From the NCBI GenBank assembly GCA_907165135.1, contig OU015568.1, forward strand, positions 6,696,001-6,760,000: DNA of 64,000 bases, given 5' to 3'. The position numbers were made by a program, and so were the translations under genes. Source of the DNA: Oikopleura dioica (lineage: Eukaryota > Animalia > Chordata). Under the pieces are notes generated by a model. The model made no database searches, had not been told where the DNA came from, and saw only the letters and a program-made list of their open reading frames with translations. This document shows, in pieces, positions 12,965-64,000 of this stretch (within the stretch, counting starts at the first letter, position 1; each line of letters starts with the position of its first letter).

Positions 12965-15116
12965 ATGCCGGGTGTTGGTCCGATCGGTGAGCCCATCTTG
13001 GCACCACCAATGCCCCCGTTGAACTACATGGACAATGATCGAATTTGGACCAAGGAGCAAGCGCTCAAGGCTGGAGTCGATATGACGAAGGAAATGTTAT
13101 GACGATTTTTTTTTATAATTTTGCAGATTTTTTTTAAGTTTATAATTTTATACTTGAGAAAAATAAATCAACATTTAACAGGCGAAAATTCACCCTGAAC
13201 CCTTCGGCCACACCTCTTCCGGAACTCAAACTCGAGGAGCCGGTAATGTGGCCCGATGGCCCGGAAATACTGATGGAGTCGAGGGTCGACCATACCTCCT
13301 CATTCCGTACCGATTTACCAACGGAGCTCACACTTCGATCGCCGGTTCGCAGCAGTACATCTCCGATTCATTCGACATGATCACAGCCGATGTTGGTGGA
13401 TGCATTCGATTTGTTGACGACTCGACTGATCAAGCTCACTCTCACTGGATTGACATTCAGGATAGTGCAACTGGCGGATGCGTTTCATACGTTGGCTACC
13501 TAGGTGGCCATCCTTCCTTTCCAAATGGACAGATGCTCAACCTTGCCCCTGGTCAAGGACCTGGAACTGGTGGCACCTGCCTCGCGAGTTATGTCGTCAA
13601 CCACGAGATGCTCCACGCTCTTGGATTCAATCACGAGCAAGAACGAGCCGATCGAGATCAACATGTGACAATTCATTTTGATCGTATCCAAGAAGACAAG
13701 CAGCACAATTTCGAGAAGCTCACTGCTTCCGAATGGTTCGATATGTCAAGTCCTTACGATGGCCAGTCTGTCATGCACTACTCTGCTTACTCCTTCCAAA
13801 CAGCTGAAGCTGATGCAGCCGACTTGCCAACAATTACCAATTTGGCTGGCGAGCCGGTTCAGTGGCCTCGAGTCCAGCGACTTTCATCGACTGATGTTCT
13901 TCAGCTCGCGAAGATGTACGAAGGCTTTTGTGGTCAGCCAGGAGGAGAGTTCATCAAGGTCCGAACTTGCAACAGTGGCGCTCAGTATCTCGAGAGCCGA
14001 GCTTGCGACGGAATCGCTGACTGCGCTGATGGTTCTGATGAAGACGCAGCTTTCTGTGATGCGCTTTGTGAACCAGATACCTTCTACGTCACTGAAAATG
14101 GCTGCAATGATAGCCAAGACTGGACTGGTACCTATGCTAAGATGGCTGACGGTGCATACCCTAAGTCTCTTACAATCTCGCTCGTCGGAGGTGATGCTTC
14201 AACTGGTTTCGATTCGGGAACCTTCATTCGAATGGACCAGGCTGACTGGTGCTTTGATACTCCAAATATTCCAAGTTTCAAAAAAGTCGGCGCGGAGAAG
14301 TACATCTGGCCCATGCCAAACGGTATGTGGTACATGGGCAGCGAAAATTGCGCTAGCTTCTTGAACTATTACTACTCGCCAAGTCAAAATGGCGGCGTTG
14401 CTAATTTCTGGGACATTGAAGTTCCCGTTTTTAACAGATGGGTCGGCGAATGGGCTACTTCTAACAATCAGCGATTCAAAAAAGGCGCCGAAGGCTGGCA
14501 AAATGGAAACTTCATTCTTAGCATCGCCGCTGATGGAGCTTGGTCAATTGCTGATGGTTCGTCATCAATTCCTCTCGGAAGCAATGCTTGTGTTACAGGA
14601 GATCATGATGGTGGTATCAAGGTAACTTTTAGCAACGAGAAATTGGGTGTTATTGTTTTCGTAGATTTCTGAGCTGGCATCATCTGGTTCCTCTTGTGCT
14701 GGAACAACTACAACAACATCAACTCTTGCTCCAACAACGTCCTTCACTACCACTGACGTTACAACAACATCGACGACGACAACTACGACTCCGTCAATCT
14801 CAACAACGACAACTATGAGTTGGGAGCAATGTGAAGCGACTTGCCAGCCAAACTGTGACGCTGAGTTTGGTGTTGGAGAAAAGAACTGCTCGTGCAACCT
14901 TTTCGACAATACTTGCATGGTTTGCGAGGCCGGATTCGTCTTCGATTTCATGTCAAATGCATGCATATGTAAATCTTATACAACTATATACAAACCAAAT
15001 AAATATATCATTCCACAACAAATTCGGCATTTCAAATGCAAATTTCAGCTCATCTTCTATTTTATCCTCCAAGAAAATCAATAGATCCTCCGCTTTCGAA
15101 TCGAAAAAATAGATGA
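12965..15116 (+). CDS. Astacin-family zinc metalloprotease with LDLa module, Thr-rich linker and Cys-rich tail
   Basis: HEMLHALGFNHEQERADRD zinc motif, SVMHY Met-turn, CDGIADCADGSDE LDLa. The 5' exon joins only through a GA-AG intron (13091-13181). True start uncertain. Confidence 0.92.
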
Positions 15117-57703: not shown

Positions 57704-58041
57704 CTTTTTTCGCAGATTAAATTTCCCACAGTGACGTTAATTCTCTTCTATGATTTCAACGCTTGAGGAACAATTGTATAGTGATTCGGTACTAATTGTT
57801 GCGCGCTTATAAACCGGTTTTCACCCCTCTCTCTAGCGACTATTGCAAATTGCAATGGCTACTATTGAACACAGTAGGAGCTAATTGAACGAGTCCGATC
57901 AACATTAGATATGCAAAATTAGAAAGAGATCTAAGGACAGATGATTTCCGATATTGATCAATCCGAACCTGCAGGTCGCCACAAGTAGGCCATCTGGTCA
58001 ATTCCTCCCCCATGCTACCTTTATTGCTCTCATAAAATAGT

Positions 58042-58630
58042 TTATTCGTTTTTATATCCAGAAATCGACTCGACAAACAGTTCAAAAGATGAGTCAAATA
58101 TCTTGTCAGAAATTAGGAATCCGATTCCTTTCAATTGGGAAGGATCTATTGGCGGTATTTTGGACACTTTTCGGCCTCTCCAGAAGAACTCGGCGGAATC
58201 AAAAGGAATTTTCACCGTCGTCCAGTCTTTTTTTGCTTTGAAATTGGCAATATATGATCCCTGACAGCTAATGATAAGAAGAGCGTAACATATTGCCTTT
58301 TACCTTTGCGTAACTCATGGTCATGTCGGTTTGAACGGGATAAAAGCGCGCTTGAAAGTTACGATTTTCAGAGCCTCTGACGCTCATTTCGATGCCGTCA
58401 AATCCTGCAAACGTTCCTGGTTCGAATTGAGTCTGGCAACTTGCGAAACCACCGAAAAAATGATCCGATAATTTTCCGTAAAACTTTAGCATTTTGTCCA
58501 TTTTCTCTACATAGCCGACGCTAGAATATTGTTTTATAAAGCCCTCTATCTTTGTTCTTATCTACCTTGATCCAAGCATAACAGTATCATTGACGGCAAA
58601 CCATGTATTTTCCAAAAAGTTGAAGTTCAT
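58042..58630 (-). CDS. Stand-alone CIA30 (PF08547)-domain protein, paralogue 1
   Basis: WFAVNDTVMLGSS, GGFASC, SYIANF, WTTVKIPF, WRG, GIGFLISDK, FELFVESISGY. Confidence 0.85.
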
Positions 58631-58783
58631 TATCTCTATCAGAGGACTATGATACGCTGCTACTCCCCTCAAGTAGCTACCTTGCTTTAGGGCACCGAAA
58701 CCTGCTTACTCTTCAGCTTTTTCTAGGTCAATTTTCTTGTCAATGGTACTTAATAAGTCGACATAATCTTTTTTGAGATAGTT

Positions 58784-59444
58784 TTATTCATTCTTGTAGC
58801 CAGAAATAGAGTCGACGAAGAGCTCGAAAGAAGAATCAAAAACCTTGTCAGCAATGAGAAATCCCATTCCCTTCAGCTGGGCTGGATCAATTGGAGGCAT
58901 TCCAGATGGTCGTCGTCCTCTCCAGCTGTATTCAGTCGAGTCAAAGGGAATTCGGACGGTTGTCCATTCTGGGGTGGCTTTGAAATTGGCAGTGTATGAT
59001 CCCTAGACATGGAAATTTGCTCGTGAATAAAAATAAGTAGGGAACGAACCTGAGCGTATCTTCCGTAAGCGTCACTTTCAACAGGATGAAATCGGGCTTG
59101 GAAGGTTCTTTCGGATCCTTTGACGTTTATTTCAATTCCGTCGAATCCAGCAAGCGCTCCTTTTTCAGCGATAATGGAAGAGTTCCATTATTGAAACTTT
59201 CAATTTGAAAGTATCATTTTATCGCCCTTTCCTGGTTCAAATCGAGTCCGGCAGCTGGCGAAACCTCCGTTGAAATCGGACGACAACTGCCCATAGAACT
59301 TGAGCATATTGTCCAGCTTCTCGACATATCCAGCGCTAGAATCGATTACATAACACCTCCTATCTCTTCTCCTTCTTACCTGACGCCTCCCATGACGTTG
59401 TCATTGACAGCGTACCATCTCAGTCCCAAAAAGTCAAAGTTCAT
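58784..59444 (-). CDS. Stand-alone CIA30 (PF08547)-domain protein, paralogue 2
   Basis: WYAVNDNVMGGVS, GGFASC, SYTANF, WTTVRIPF, IDPAQLKGMGFLIADK, FELFVDSISGY. Similar intron layout to paralogue 1. Confidence 0.85.
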
Positions 59445-59824
59445 CTCAACCGATTTCGCTCTAATGTTCAAAAAACAAAAAGAGATAAATTTTGTTATTC
59501 TCATCTCGAAAATGAATTTCAGTTTTTTCAGGGCAGGCAAAAACGGACTCGCGAACAGTTACGTCAACAGCTAGTCATATTTGGGTTCAACCGAGTTCGC
59601 TATTCGTTTTTTGGGCAAATTTGGGAAGACAACATTGATCATCCTTTATTCTTCTTTGACAAGCTATAAAAGCAAGCGAGGATACCTACTGAAAATGGGC
59701 GGAAGTGTGTGGTCCTGCCTTTGGGCCAGACAAAGGAACCTAGTGAACATTTCTTGAGTTGGACATAAAACTGAACTAAAGAGGTCAAAACGATCCAGGC
59801 AGAAAAGATGAATCATCTTCAATC

Positions 59825-60103
59825 TCACATAAAATCGTCGGAATCATTGTCGGAGTCGTTGTTCGTCGTCGCGGGCGGATCATCTTCAAAGAGTCTATCG
59901 TATGACTTTTCGTATCTTTCCTTCTCGCATTGCAGCTTGAAGGCCTTTTCTTTCTCAGCTGCGTCTTTCGCCTTGGCTTTTTGCTCGGCGAGGACTTCAG
60001 CGTCCCGGGCGAGTCGTTCCGCCTGCAGATCTGGCTTCATGTCCTCTGAGCGCGTCTTTTCGATCTTTTTCACGATGTCGTTGTTTTTCTTCGCGGTGAT
60101 GTA
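59825..60103 (-). CDS. CCDC25: Last exon of CCDC25; the rest of the gene is not found in the window
   Basis: KKNNDIVKKIEKTR...PDLQAER...SYDRLF...NDSDDFM* matches the CCDC25 C-terminus. Preceded by GCTAACTTCAG acceptor with an in-frame stop upstream. Confidence 0.75.
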   Translation of the reverse strand, partial: YITAKKNNDIVKKIEKTRSEDMKPDLQAERLARDAEVLAEQKAKAKDAAEKEKAFKLQCEKERYEKSYDRLFEDDPPATTNNDSDNDSDDFM

Positions 60104-60547
60104 CTGAAGTTAGCGTCCCGAGATCAACTCCGTCGTCCATTCTAATTAGTGGTTTTTGTAACTCGGTAACGCTAAGTTAGAAGACGGCGACGGGAAGCCG
60201 CGAATTCATTAATGCGTACTTTATTGTAGGATCAAGTCCTGAGGTACAGAAATGGCGCAGTAAAGAGAGACCAATTAGTAACCGGTCAAGCATTGCTTGA
60301 AGTGTAACGTGGAAAATTGATGGAGCGGGATGTATTTGATGGAACTATGCATGTGAGTGTGCGTTCACCCATAAACGGAAGAGCGAAGAGTGATAGATAC
60401 TTTTAAAGAAGTGTAAGCGAGTATGCGAAACCCAATATATTAATATTGAAACGAAATTGAATAGGTCTTGAGGTGATTTTAAATCGATTTCATATTTTTT
60501 CTTCTATACTCAGCTTCGAAAAAAGAATTTTTAAATCGTTGAACAGC

Positions 60548-62250
60548 TTATTCGGTTTGGCCAACCAAAGCGTCTAATTGTTCGTCCGTGATGCCGTCTT
60601 CTTTGGCAGCCTCTCGGAGCGTGATTCCTTCTTTATCCGCGTTCTTGGCGATGTGGACGGCCTTATCTTGTCCGAAGTGGAGGTGCAAAGCTGAAAAAGG
60701 GTTGAAAAATGGGTTACTTGGAAATGTTATCACCTGTTACCAGCATAAGAGACTCATTGAGAAGCGGATCGATCGAGTTATCAACGAAGGCATTGCACGC
60801 AGTGCCGATGAGCTTGGCAGATCGGAGAACGTTCGACGCTATGACTGGCTATTGATTGAGTGTTATGAAGGGGTTGATAATAGAATAAAATTTACCGTGG
60901 AGACGTTGAGCTCAAAGTTATCGCCAGCGTTGACAAACATATTATTGGCCATGACCTGCGTACAGACCATAGTGATAGCTTCAACCTGAGTTGGGTTAAC
61001 CTTCTCCTTTTCGGGAAGACCACAATGTGGTCCAGAAGCGAGGAGGCGTATACCATTGGCAATCTTCTGGATGACTCGGGCGACAACGTTGAGAGCGCGG
61101 GAAACCTCAAACATGGCCTCATGGTTGGGGAGAGCATCGAACTTGTTGGGAGCGGAGACAAATCGAAGACCGGTGTAGTTGAAAAGCTCCTCACAGCAAG
61201 CCTCTGCGAAACCAATTCCAGCGTTGAGACCGGTTCCAACAGCGGTGCCACCGATGGCAAGTTCGTATACTCTCGGAAGAGTGGCTTCAACACGGGCGAT
61301 TCCGTTATCGAGCTGTTGAACGTATCCAGACAATTCCTTTCCAAGAGTCAATGGAGTACGGTCCATCATATGATTTCCGCCAATTTCGACAATGTGCTCA
61401 AAAGGCTTCTGCTTCTCGTAGATGGCATGTCGGAAGTTCAAGAGGGCTGGGAGAAGATCGTTCTTGATTTCAAGAGCGGTGGCGACGTGCATGGCCGTAG
61501 GAAAGGTGGAGTTGGAGGTTTGAGACTTGTTGACGTGATCGTTGGGGTGGACGGGGAAATTGGTGCCGACTTCGCTGTCGAGGATGAGATTGGCGCGATT
61601 GGAAATCACCTCGTTGGTGTTTATGTTCGCCTGGGTGCCAGAGCCAGCCTGGAAGGTGCAAAGAGGAAAGTGACCCTCGTCGTAAAGCGTCCCATAAATG
61701 ACCTCCTCGGCGGCCAGTTTGATGGCGTCTGCGAGCTGGGCATCGAGTCCAAATTTCTGGTTAGCTTCGGCGCAGGCCTTCTTGAGATAACCAAAAGCCT
61801 AGTGAAGCGGTTACAAATGGAATAATTTAATTATCAATTACCTGAATTATCTGTCGGGGAATCTTATCGCCCTCGCCGCCAATGGGGAAATTTTTCAACG
61901 ATCGGGCAGTCTGGCAGCCATAGAGCTTGTCGTTTGGCACCTGCATCTCACCCATGGTGTCGGTCTCGGTTCGGAAGCCAGCCGCCTAGAATTTATTTTA
62001 AAATGGCCAATTTATCACGATGGCGATGAAACTGAAATTCAGTTTTATATTATATAAATCTTACCGCTTGCTCATATTCTTCCACTGGCTCCTGAACTAG
62101 CTCCTCAACTGGCTCGTGAACTGGATCCAGATCTGGTTCCATAAACGGTTCCAGAAATGGTTCCTGATCTTGTCCAACGTCTTGATCTTCTCCATCAGCA
62201 GGTCCCTCAGCGGGAATTTGCTCGTCGGCCGGAACTTGAGCTTCCAATTC
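60548..62250 (-). CDS. Class II fumarase-like protein, predicted catalytically inactive
   Basis: [57 protein letters not shown]. The frame is open over at least 5 exons but GSSIMPG is absent. Confidence 0.9.
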
Positions 62251-62333
62251 CTAAACGTTCGTAATTTTAACCATCTAAAAACCTAAGAACCTTTTCCCAC
62301 AATTGATTATTGACTATATTATTTTTTAATTGA

Positions 62334-64000
62334 CTACATGTTATTAATTTTATAACCGATTTCAAAAGACTCAAATTCGACCTGTTCCGACGTTTTTAAG
62401 CAGGAATGCTCGGCTGACAACAACGAGGAGAAGATCAAAAGTGAGGATACGATCGAGATTGATACAAATAATACGAACGAGAACAGCAATGGATCTGCTT
62501 CGTTGATGGAGATTTTCGGAAAAGCAGGATTTCCAAATGGCATTCCAGGATTACCAGGTTCGTAAAAAAGTCGATCTAACTTCTCACAGTTCAAGCGCTC
62601 AACGGGCAAATACAGAATCCAATTAAAGCCCTCTTCGCTGGACAAAATCAACAATCCCTTTTATGATAAAGTGGCGCTTAAAAACTCCGCAAAGAATGCC
62701 GAAAGCAATCGACACTTTTAAGAATCTTGGTGATCTAGTAGAAAATGTATCCCTTTACTTTTCCGACGATGACTTGCGAAAGATGGTTCTCCTCGATCCT
62801 GATCTCAGATCTTTATTCAAATCGATTATTTACGTTTGTTTAGACATCCTCCTAGAAAATGCTGAGCATATAAAGGCCACTGCCCGAATCTTCTACATGC
62901 ACGACTTTACACTAGTAGAATCTAAAGGAACGAGGCTGACGATTCTTTTCCCTTTGTTACAGGGTTTCCAGGCAATTTCCTAAGTCCGCAAAAGCCATCT
63001 CAACTCAGAATCCTAGTTGTTTGACGTCAAAGCTTTTTTCGATTGATGCAACTTCGAACCGATACACGGATCTAGATAAACAACTTTTCTTTCTGCTCCA
63101 CGAGGCGGGCTTCACCACCAAGCAGATCAGATACAACCCGCTTTTACTAACAACTGAGAAGGCCGTGAATCACGGCCCGTGATAACTGAAAGACTTCTCT
63201 TTTTGCGAGAAACGAATAGGATAAATTTTGACATCAACGCCGAAGGAAGTCCAGAGCATGTGCCTATTGATGCACTTTGTCAAGTGTTCAAAACTTAGCC
63301 TATTAGCGATTCTCTGCGTCCAATATTGACACGGAACGATGGCAGCCCTCAAGAGATCATGAAAAGATCTTTTCTGTAGAAAAAATTGTCGCCAGCGACA
63401 ATTGAATAAGCTCAGGCAGCGAAGAGCAGCACTGAGAAGCGAATAAAGACGACAAAAGGAAAAGTCGACAAAATGGAGCTGCAAACAAAGCTAGGCAAAA
63501 TTTAGTCACTTAGAAGATATTTTTTAACCGTAGAATTACAACTTTATCATAATTATCATAAACATAAAGATAATCTCTGTTACTTAGATGGGGAGGTGCA
63601 TTTGGAAGTCGCCAATGTCAATAAGATCCGGGATCTTAGATCCCCTTTGCCAAGAGCCAACGCTTAGCAAAGCCGGTATCTTACGGTAAATGGGACGAGA
63701 CGATAGATGGGACTGGAAACACTCCAATGTGCCCTCAGTATGACGGATTCATCGACAAAGTTGATCAGATGGAAGGACAGACTTATTAATCGCCCAATGT
63801 TCGACAAATTGGAAGGTTTTTTAAGTCATAACCGACAATAAATATGGCTAAGATTTTATAAAAAAAAATGTGATAAAAACACAGAAAAGGTGGCTAAAAC
63901 GGAAACCAATGACGAAGTATTACATCTCAGTGTATATACTCCTTCAAACTTTCAATCATCTACAATGGTCTTCAATTGTTGACTTTGAACGTCTTTGATT
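62334..64000 (-). CDS. Fragments of an unidentified gene with a hydrophobic TM-like segment
   Basis: Open stretches at 62334-62654 (LLFSFVLFVSISIVSSLLIFSSLL), 63170-63484 and ~63600-63790 with GTAAG donors. Exon structure unresolved. Confidence 0.3.

Follow-up and report, generated by a model that had tools for sequence, protein, structure and literature searches.

The delta-1 crystallin of birds is an inactive paralogue of argininosuccinate lyase; delta crystallin keeps the SS loop and the fold of the enzyme, is massively expressed and shows clear purifying selection. In class II fumarases, the active site is formed by three segments. Delta crystallin is listed as a member of the same superfamily (PMC11880804), and the SS loop has been found in all characterised members, in which mutants of the loop serine are inactive and Ser-to-Ala mutants in particular lose activity (PMC11880804; PMC6650407). 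The tunicate Oikopleura dioica comprises deeply diverged cryptic lineages, among which the Okinawa lineage split off about 25 million years ago (PMC11067885). We searched the literature for Oikopleura fumarase and for fumarase pseudoenzymes and found no paper. The canonical mitochondrial/cytosolic class II fumarate hydratases (FH) known from O. dioica, PAR.g12277 and g12256 in Okinawa and CBY23881 in Bergen, carry a Lyase_1 and a FumaraseC_C domain and have three internal introns. The gene described here shares these domains and intron positions, and its frame is open across intact splice sites, with the catalytic loop gone.

The gene lies in a window of 64,000 nucleotides of O. dioica contig OU015568.1, and all positions below refer to this window unless a locus is named. 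It is encoded on the minus strand in four exons that span 61985-60548, and its spliced frame is open for 434 codons. Exon E1 (61842-61985, minus strand) contributes 48 codons and is 93% identical in nucleotides to canonical exon 2, while E2 (60896-61798, minus strand) contributes 301 codons that make up the Lyase_1 core. E3 (60734-60848, minus strand) is 115 nt long and ends in phase 1, and E4 (60548-60690, minus strand) holds a remnant of FumaraseC_C and ends with a TAA at 60550-60548. The three introns measure 43, 47 and 43 nt, and all of them are bounded by GT and AG. The exons were searched against databases one by one rather than as a spliced full-length protein. E2 matched the Pfam profile Lyase_1 (PF00206) with an E value of 4.2e-65 over profile positions 32-311 of 312, and it matched chains of human FH structures with an E value of 2e-97. 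E4 scored 37.8 bits against FumaraseC_C (PF10415; cutoff 32.5), with a deletion of 10 amino acids upstream of the domain and with the final six residues absent. These matches identify the minus-strand gene as a class II fumarase homologue of the aspartase/fumarase superfamily. An AlphaFold2 model of E2 alone reached a mediocre mean pLDDT of 65, was of low confidence at all active-site loops and is silent on assembly.

The protein closest to the copy is the canonical FH of Okinawa O. dioica (P0001), which is 81% identical to it in amino acids and has all motifs intact. The Okinawa canonical gene (L001) and the copy are 84.6% identical over 1563 nt, introns included, with a dS of 0.19. Because the alignment runs through introns at the same positions as in the canonical gene, the copy arose by duplication at the DNA level; a retrocopy origin is ruled out by these shared positions together with an intron identity of 88.6%. 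The copy and the Bergen canonical gene share only 72.9% identity, compared with 78-81% between the Okinawa and Bergen loci. Since the copy is closer to the Okinawa than to the Bergen gene and has Okinawa-specific residues in common with Okinawa FH, its parent was an Okinawa-type FH, duplicated after the split from the Bergen-type lineages. Set against a dS of 0.86 for the split of about 25 million years, the value of 0.19 would place the duplication, as a rough inference, a few million years ago.

The duplicated segment is incomplete at both ends. On the 5' side, the copy ceases to resemble the canonical gene at about 62065-62075, where the alternative mini-exon ATGATTCCG lies, and the counterpart of the ATG of this mini-exon in the window is 2 nt out of register. 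Intron 0 (61986-62064, minus strand; GT at 62064-62063, AG at 61987-61986) is homologous to canonical intron 0 along its length. On the 3' side, homology extends to 60552 and so falls 18 nt short of the canonical stop; the copy's own TAA is placed exactly at this junction. The canonical presequence exon (L001:9623-9676, MRQFVLSRVVRPKIPSRF), which matches the N terminus of the Bergen protein P0129, has no counterpart in the window. Judged from these boundaries, the copy is a partial, lineage-specific, DNA-level duplicate that begins with the alternative mini-exon and intron 0 and breaks off 18 nt short of the stop.

In both Okinawa and Bergen, canonical FH is situated in a block of thiolase, thymidylate kinase (TMPK), pseudouridine synthase (PUS), one further gene (x), FH and UQ_con. 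No thiolase, TMPK, PUS or UQ_con neighbour is present within the window, and the locus shows no synteny with the canonical one. Together with the intact canonical genes of Okinawa (P0001, P0128) and Bergen (P0129), this bears out the claim of an earlier note, made from the sequence alone, that the gene is a paralogue rather than canonical FH. Unlike canonical FH, the copy thus occupies a different locus. Missing from it are the SS loop and 13 further residues, as well as the exon of the presequence and the final six codons, and 26 of its invariant residues are replaced. The genes recognised in the window encode astacin, chitin synthase, cadherin and ZP-N proteins, and MITE/hAT repeats are also present. 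Transposon capture was considered and rejected, as there were no inverted or direct repeats flanking 60100-62400 and no flank was repeated elsewhere in the window. Searches of the flanks at 62401-62983 and 59828-60073 against Pfam and Atlas gave no match, and only a CIA30 fragment was found at 58271-58501.

The lesions of the copy were scored against human FH and 10 canonical fumarases. A canonical stretch of 23 residues around the SS loop is reduced to 10 residues (60992-61021, minus strand) by deletions of 15 nt and 24 nt, with junctions near 61020/61019 and 61004/61003. The resulting gaps of 5 and 8 amino acids remove GELN(L) and PGSSIMPG, both serines included, and leave the Lys and Asn of KVN. 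The signature GSSxxPxKxN is therefore absent from the copy, with G, S, S, I, M, P and G deleted and only KVN left. Elsewhere in E2, GRTH is changed to GGNH (61370-61381, minus strand; Arg to Gly and Thr to Asn, with His kept). In addition, TSNST (61505-61519, minus strand) replaces the SSNCT of canonical Oikopleura FH and the SSNDT of the human enzyme, the first Ser being changed to Thr, and QTGSGTQ is changed to QAGSGTQ, which places an Ala for Thr in an active-site segment. The HPNDHVN stretch is retained. A 9-nt deletion in E2 has turned GGMNGHFELNV into AGDNFELNV, with 3 amino acids lost near 60919; a 30-nt in-frame deletion in E3 has removed 10 amino acids (CVVGITANEA in the canonical Oikopleura protein) near 60775, before LNESLMLVT; and the C-terminal six codons (DMLGPK) are missing. 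The exon indels of 15, 24, 9 and 30 nt are all multiples of three.

These comparisons agree with the earlier note in its description of a fumarase paralogue that has an open frame and lacks the catalytic SS loop, in the changes of GRTH to GGNH and of SSNDT to TSNST, and in the statement that all lesions keep the frame and that the introns look normal, with every GT-AG intact. The further in-frame deletion that it placed before LNESLMLVT is also there, with a size of 10 amino acids rather than about 12. Given that every superfamily member characterised so far has the SS loop, that serine mutants of the loop are inactive and that the copy has the loop deleted, loss of catalysis in the copy is near certain on present sequence comparisons. 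The copy is an enzyme homologue without essential catalytic residues, which is one of the marks of a pseudoenzyme, a retained paralogue that is catalytically dead.

The deletions were recovered in independent DNA. A Logan DNA contig from sample X3 covers 60474-60978 with 0 differences from the window, and a second one covers 60968-61304 without gaps and spans the site of the SS loop. A Logan DNA contig from sample X4 covers 60644-60816 and is gapless over the deletion site in E3. In four DNA runs from three studies, the k-mer shares of the gene stretch were 0.95, 0.85, 0.68 and 0.47. Since X3 and X4 are different samples from different studies and their contigs are gapless at the sites they cover, the concern that the deletions were assembly errors was not borne out.

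Contigs of X3 and X4 also revealed variation. The window differs from the X4 allele by 8 synonymous changes and 2 replaced codons, and 7 of these synonymous differences show the canonical state in X4, 5 of them in consecutive codons. These five codons (TLPRV, 61268-61280) are each synonymously changed in the window in relation to both the canonical gene and the X4 allele, which would point to an event that changed several nucleotides at once or to a tract converted from an unseen donor. Because 7 of the X4 synonymous differences are canonical and 5 of them are consecutive, gene conversion may be involved in the synonymous pattern that separates X4 from the window. In X3, a second version of 61111-61277 carries 14 differences without gaps; over 170 nt, this second haplotype or copy has eight residues replaced, one of which is G294D in the conserved GGTAVGTG motif, and at sites not matching the canonical gene it shows 10 non-synonymous and 3 synonymous nucleotide changes. 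Either a very divergent allele or a further dead fumarase copy would account for it. Around the gene, a stretch of 297 nt just 3' of it (60146-60442) is represented in X3 and X4 contigs by a 39-nt sequence, an insertion/deletion polymorphism, and 65 nt at 62536-62600, in the plus-strand region upstream of the gene, are skipped by an X4 contig.

To evaluate the selective constraint on the copy, changes were polarised with a Bergen-type cDNA (L002). A total of 28.5 synonymous and 81.5 non-synonymous changes were assigned to the branch of the copy, which gives an omega (dN/dS) of 0.86 that is not different from 1 (bootstrap CI 0.57-1.37), while the canonical branch received 13 synonymous and 3 non-synonymous changes (omega 0.07). 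The earlier note had proposed a retained paralogue and had named a dN/dS near 1 as evidence against it, and the value obtained goes against that proposal; neutral evolution with an omega of about 1 is what is looked for in a pseudogene, and the copy shows it. Among the positions that are invariant in 106 class II fumarases, 26 of 160 (16%) are replaced in the copy and 12 more are deleted, compared with replacement at 16-25% of the variable positions, and the replacements at invariant positions include G-to-D/R and P-to-R. In addition, GC3 has relaxed from 0.65 to 0.60. Taken together, the omega of about 0.86, the replacements that are blind to conservation and the drop in GC3 are read here as the signature of a lost ancestral constraint. 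The copy resembles delta-1 crystallin in being a duplicate within the superfamily that has lost catalysis and has an open frame. However, unlike delta crystallin, it has its loop deleted and an omega of about 0.86, and no sign of structural recruitment was seen.

The integrity of the frame gave a different picture. No stop codon has arisen in the copy despite 128 inferred substitutions on its own branch, for which simulation gave a P of 0.02-0.03. In O. dioica alignments, indels numbered 0.07 or more per substitution, and in 81-96% of cases their length was not divisible by three; at the rates inferred from these alignments, about 7 frameshifts would be expected in the exons of the copy, and 0 were observed (Poisson P about 6e-4). 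The introns of the copy do carry 1-nt and other small indels, while its exons carry only the four in-frame ones. All 14 splice-site bases are intact, with a chance of about 0.2 under neutrality. Overall, 0 disabling lesions, whether stop, frameshift or broken splice site, were present in the 434 codons and 3 introns, and their joint absence would have a probability of about 1e-5 to 1e-4 under neutrality, a figure that is less extreme given ascertainment, as the finding was picked for its open frame. The frame and all splice sites are thus intact beyond the neutral expectation, which speaks for the earlier reading.

The changes are also unevenly distributed along the copy. The order of non-synonymous and synonymous changes is non-random (runs test p = 0.013), and the longest stretch free of replacements comprises 36 codons (p = 0.03). 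This stretch (61225-61345, minus strand), which includes the five TLPRV codons, shows 8 synonymous and 0 non-synonymous changes relative to the canonical gene and would be explained by constraint acting locally or by a tract of gene conversion. For the first 60 codons omega is 0.15, as against 1.1-4.7 elsewhere. Among the variants, the 8 synonymous changes and 2 replaced codons that separate the window from X4 are in line with constraint, but the X3 haplotype or copy with its eight replacements is not. The integrity of the frame and this patchy constraint suggest that the frame has been kept by selection.

We searched for expression of the copy and for a complete 5' end. Among the indexed runs, the gene stretch was found in DNA runs only and in no RNA run. 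Two RNA runs (X9 and X6) gave 0 reads over the whole 3.2 kb, neighbouring genes included; they probably come from a different cryptic lineage. Searches of public proteins between 165 and 926 aa long recovered canonical fumarases only and no copy-like protein; P0146 (649 aa) represents an unrelated, partial tandem duplication. Exact and degenerate scans of metagenome contigs for the junction of the SS deletion found nothing. An in-frame start lies within E1, where the ATG at 61955-61953 in the context ACCATGG predicts a product of 424 aa, and an in-frame TAG immediately precedes E1 at the acceptor of intron 0. Further upstream, a candidate acidic leader exon E0 (62065-62250, minus strand) provides 62 codons in phase with E1 via a GT donor. 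It is not derived from the canonical gene, and the plus strand is open there too. The X4 allele diverges over it at 62084 and stays in frame for at least 10 codons. No X4 contig reaches 95% likeness over 62161-62374, which means that the X4 organism is strongly different around the candidate leader. A second candidate upstream exon (62382-62543, minus strand) starts with an ATG at 62543, encodes a hydrophobic stretch of 24 residues and could be joined to E0 in phase through a GT donor. As it lies opposite an acidic/Asn-rich frame that is open on the plus strand, its strand is ambiguous. Both candidate exons are outside the duplicated segment.

We therefore have to ask what the open frame stands for. 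Neutral decay would be expected to have left the frame in far worse condition, which makes a retained paralogue plausible, and we consider the chances that the copy is a retained pseudoenzyme to be about even. Under this reading, the duplicate would have landed at a new locus without the exon for the mitochondrial presequence, and it would be translated now, or would have been until very recently, as a non-mitochondrial, inert protein with a fumarase fold, starting either at the ACCATGG in E1 or in a recruited acidic leader exon. Its value would then rest on full-length translation and not on the constraints of the ancestral enzyme, which would make it a pseudoenzyme in the making; its translation, cellular location and any function are proposals, whereas the DNA shows directly where the copy came from, what it has lost and that its frame is intact. 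Among the functions suggested earlier, a dominant-negative subunit fits worst, because the part that forms the tetramer core is the least constrained: central omega is about 1.1 or more and only the N-terminal part is constrained. A binder of fumarate or malate is doubtful, as residues are changed in all three active-site segments. A still-active lyase, with fumarase activity or an altered chemistry, is very improbable. In its favour, the copy retains the HPNDHVN stretch, the His of GRTH and both Lys and Asn of KVN. Against it, the entire mobile loop is gone and with it both serines of the SS loop, the other active-site segments show changes of Thr to Asn, Arg to Gly, Ser to Thr and Thr to Ala, replacements affect 26 residues that are otherwise invariant, and serine mutants of the loop are inactive (PMC11880804). 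That the locus is an artefact of assembly or collapse, with the deletions absent from the DNA of the animal, can be practically dismissed: nothing was found that speaks for it, the independent X3 and X4 contigs cover the deletion sites without indels and the k-mer shares are 0.47-0.95 in four runs.

The strongest alternative is an unprocessed pseudogene, that is, a partial duplicate that was dead on arrival, has since drifted neutrally and whose frame is open by luck, by recent death or through the help of occasional gene conversion from the canonical gene; we regard this as a real possibility, though somewhat doubtful. Like unprocessed (duplicated) pseudogenes, the copy is a partial genomic duplicate with introns, a near-neutral evolution of amino acids and a relaxed codon usage. 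It is without the first coding exon, the last six codons and a promoter, several active-site residues and four segments of coding sequence have been lost, such a protein is absent from or unannotated in public proteomes, the stretch was found in no indexed RNA run, the divergent X3 haplotype has roughly neutral changes, and MITE/hAT elements are present in the window. However, such pseudogenes differ from the copy, which has diverged by about 10% along its own branch and yet contains neither a stop nor a frameshift nor a damaged splice site. The low joint chance of these absences, the small indels that the introns of the copy do show, the non-random order of replacements and synonymous changes (p about 0.013) and the omega of 0.15 in the first 60 codons all argue against neutral decay. 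An intact frame together with an omega of about 1 would also be predicted if the frame were kept for a reason that has nothing to do with the fumarase fold, for example to let a transcript that serves downstream genes escape NMD or because the copy is the tail of a chimeric gene. In the operon variant, the copy would be joined to a coiled-coil ORF and a CIA30-like gene, and ORFs on the same strand do begin downstream at a distance of 475 nt, which shrinks to about 217 nt in alleles that lack the 297-nt insertion; in the chimera variant, the functional part would be the upstream anchor and the acidic leader, for which in-phase upstream ORFs with donor sites are available. We consider a reason of this kind unlikely, as no RNA evidence was found for any proposed join, both strands are open over the upstream candidates and the N-terminal fumarase part is itself at low omega. 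The specific arrangement in which a signal-anchor exon (62543-62382) and an acidic linker (62250-62065) precede the dead fumarase as the C-terminal body of one chimeric gene seems to us a little less probable still; if it were true, an enzyme fold would have been turned, as in delta crystallin, into a structural protein that is secreted or tethered to the membrane, and this would have happened in a single Oikopleura lineage during the last few million years.

If the copy is translated, it would be a dated and very young case of an enzyme of central metabolism becoming a non-enzyme while the parent gene is still present, and, with its loop removed by two clean in-frame deletions, it would offer a convenient case for studying what selection favours first in a fold that is being repurposed. 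If it is not translated, it would be an ordinary duplicate pseudogene, and its open frame would be a caution for annotation pipelines that would call it a 'fumarate hydratase'.

The assignment of the window to a lineage was complicated by its astacin gene (13248-14669, compared with L003 and L004), which is 83% identical in amino acids to a Bergen protein and only 63-78% to the best annotated Okinawa protein, whereas the dead fumarase clearly goes back to an Okinawa-type FH. The Okinawa match is probably a paralogue. If the window were not of the Okinawa clade, an Okinawa-type fumarase copy would have crossed lineages.

Several further observations concern the canonical genes and the neighbourhood. 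On chromosome PAR of OKI2018_I69, there are two canonical FH loci about 75 kb apart (L001:1-14312 and L005:3897-17267) that are 97-99.9% identical in nucleotides and have the same neighbours. A segmental duplication of recent date or a haplotig that was left uncollapsed would explain the pair. Of the two PAR models, the second (g12256, 529 aa) has an N-terminal extension that is doubtful. In the Okinawa canonical FH, the presequence exon MRQFVLSRVVRPKIPSRF, as in Bergen CBY23881, is situated upstream of the annotated mini-exon MIP (L001:10001-10009), and these two alternative first exons of the canonical gene could give rise to mitochondrial and cytosolic forms. Downstream of the copy, exons of CIA30, a complex I assembly factor, are found on the minus strand at 58041-59540. 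They contain an internal or tandem duplication in which 58041-58527 and 58783-59342 are 74-76% identical, and they may belong to one gene, to two genes or to fragments.
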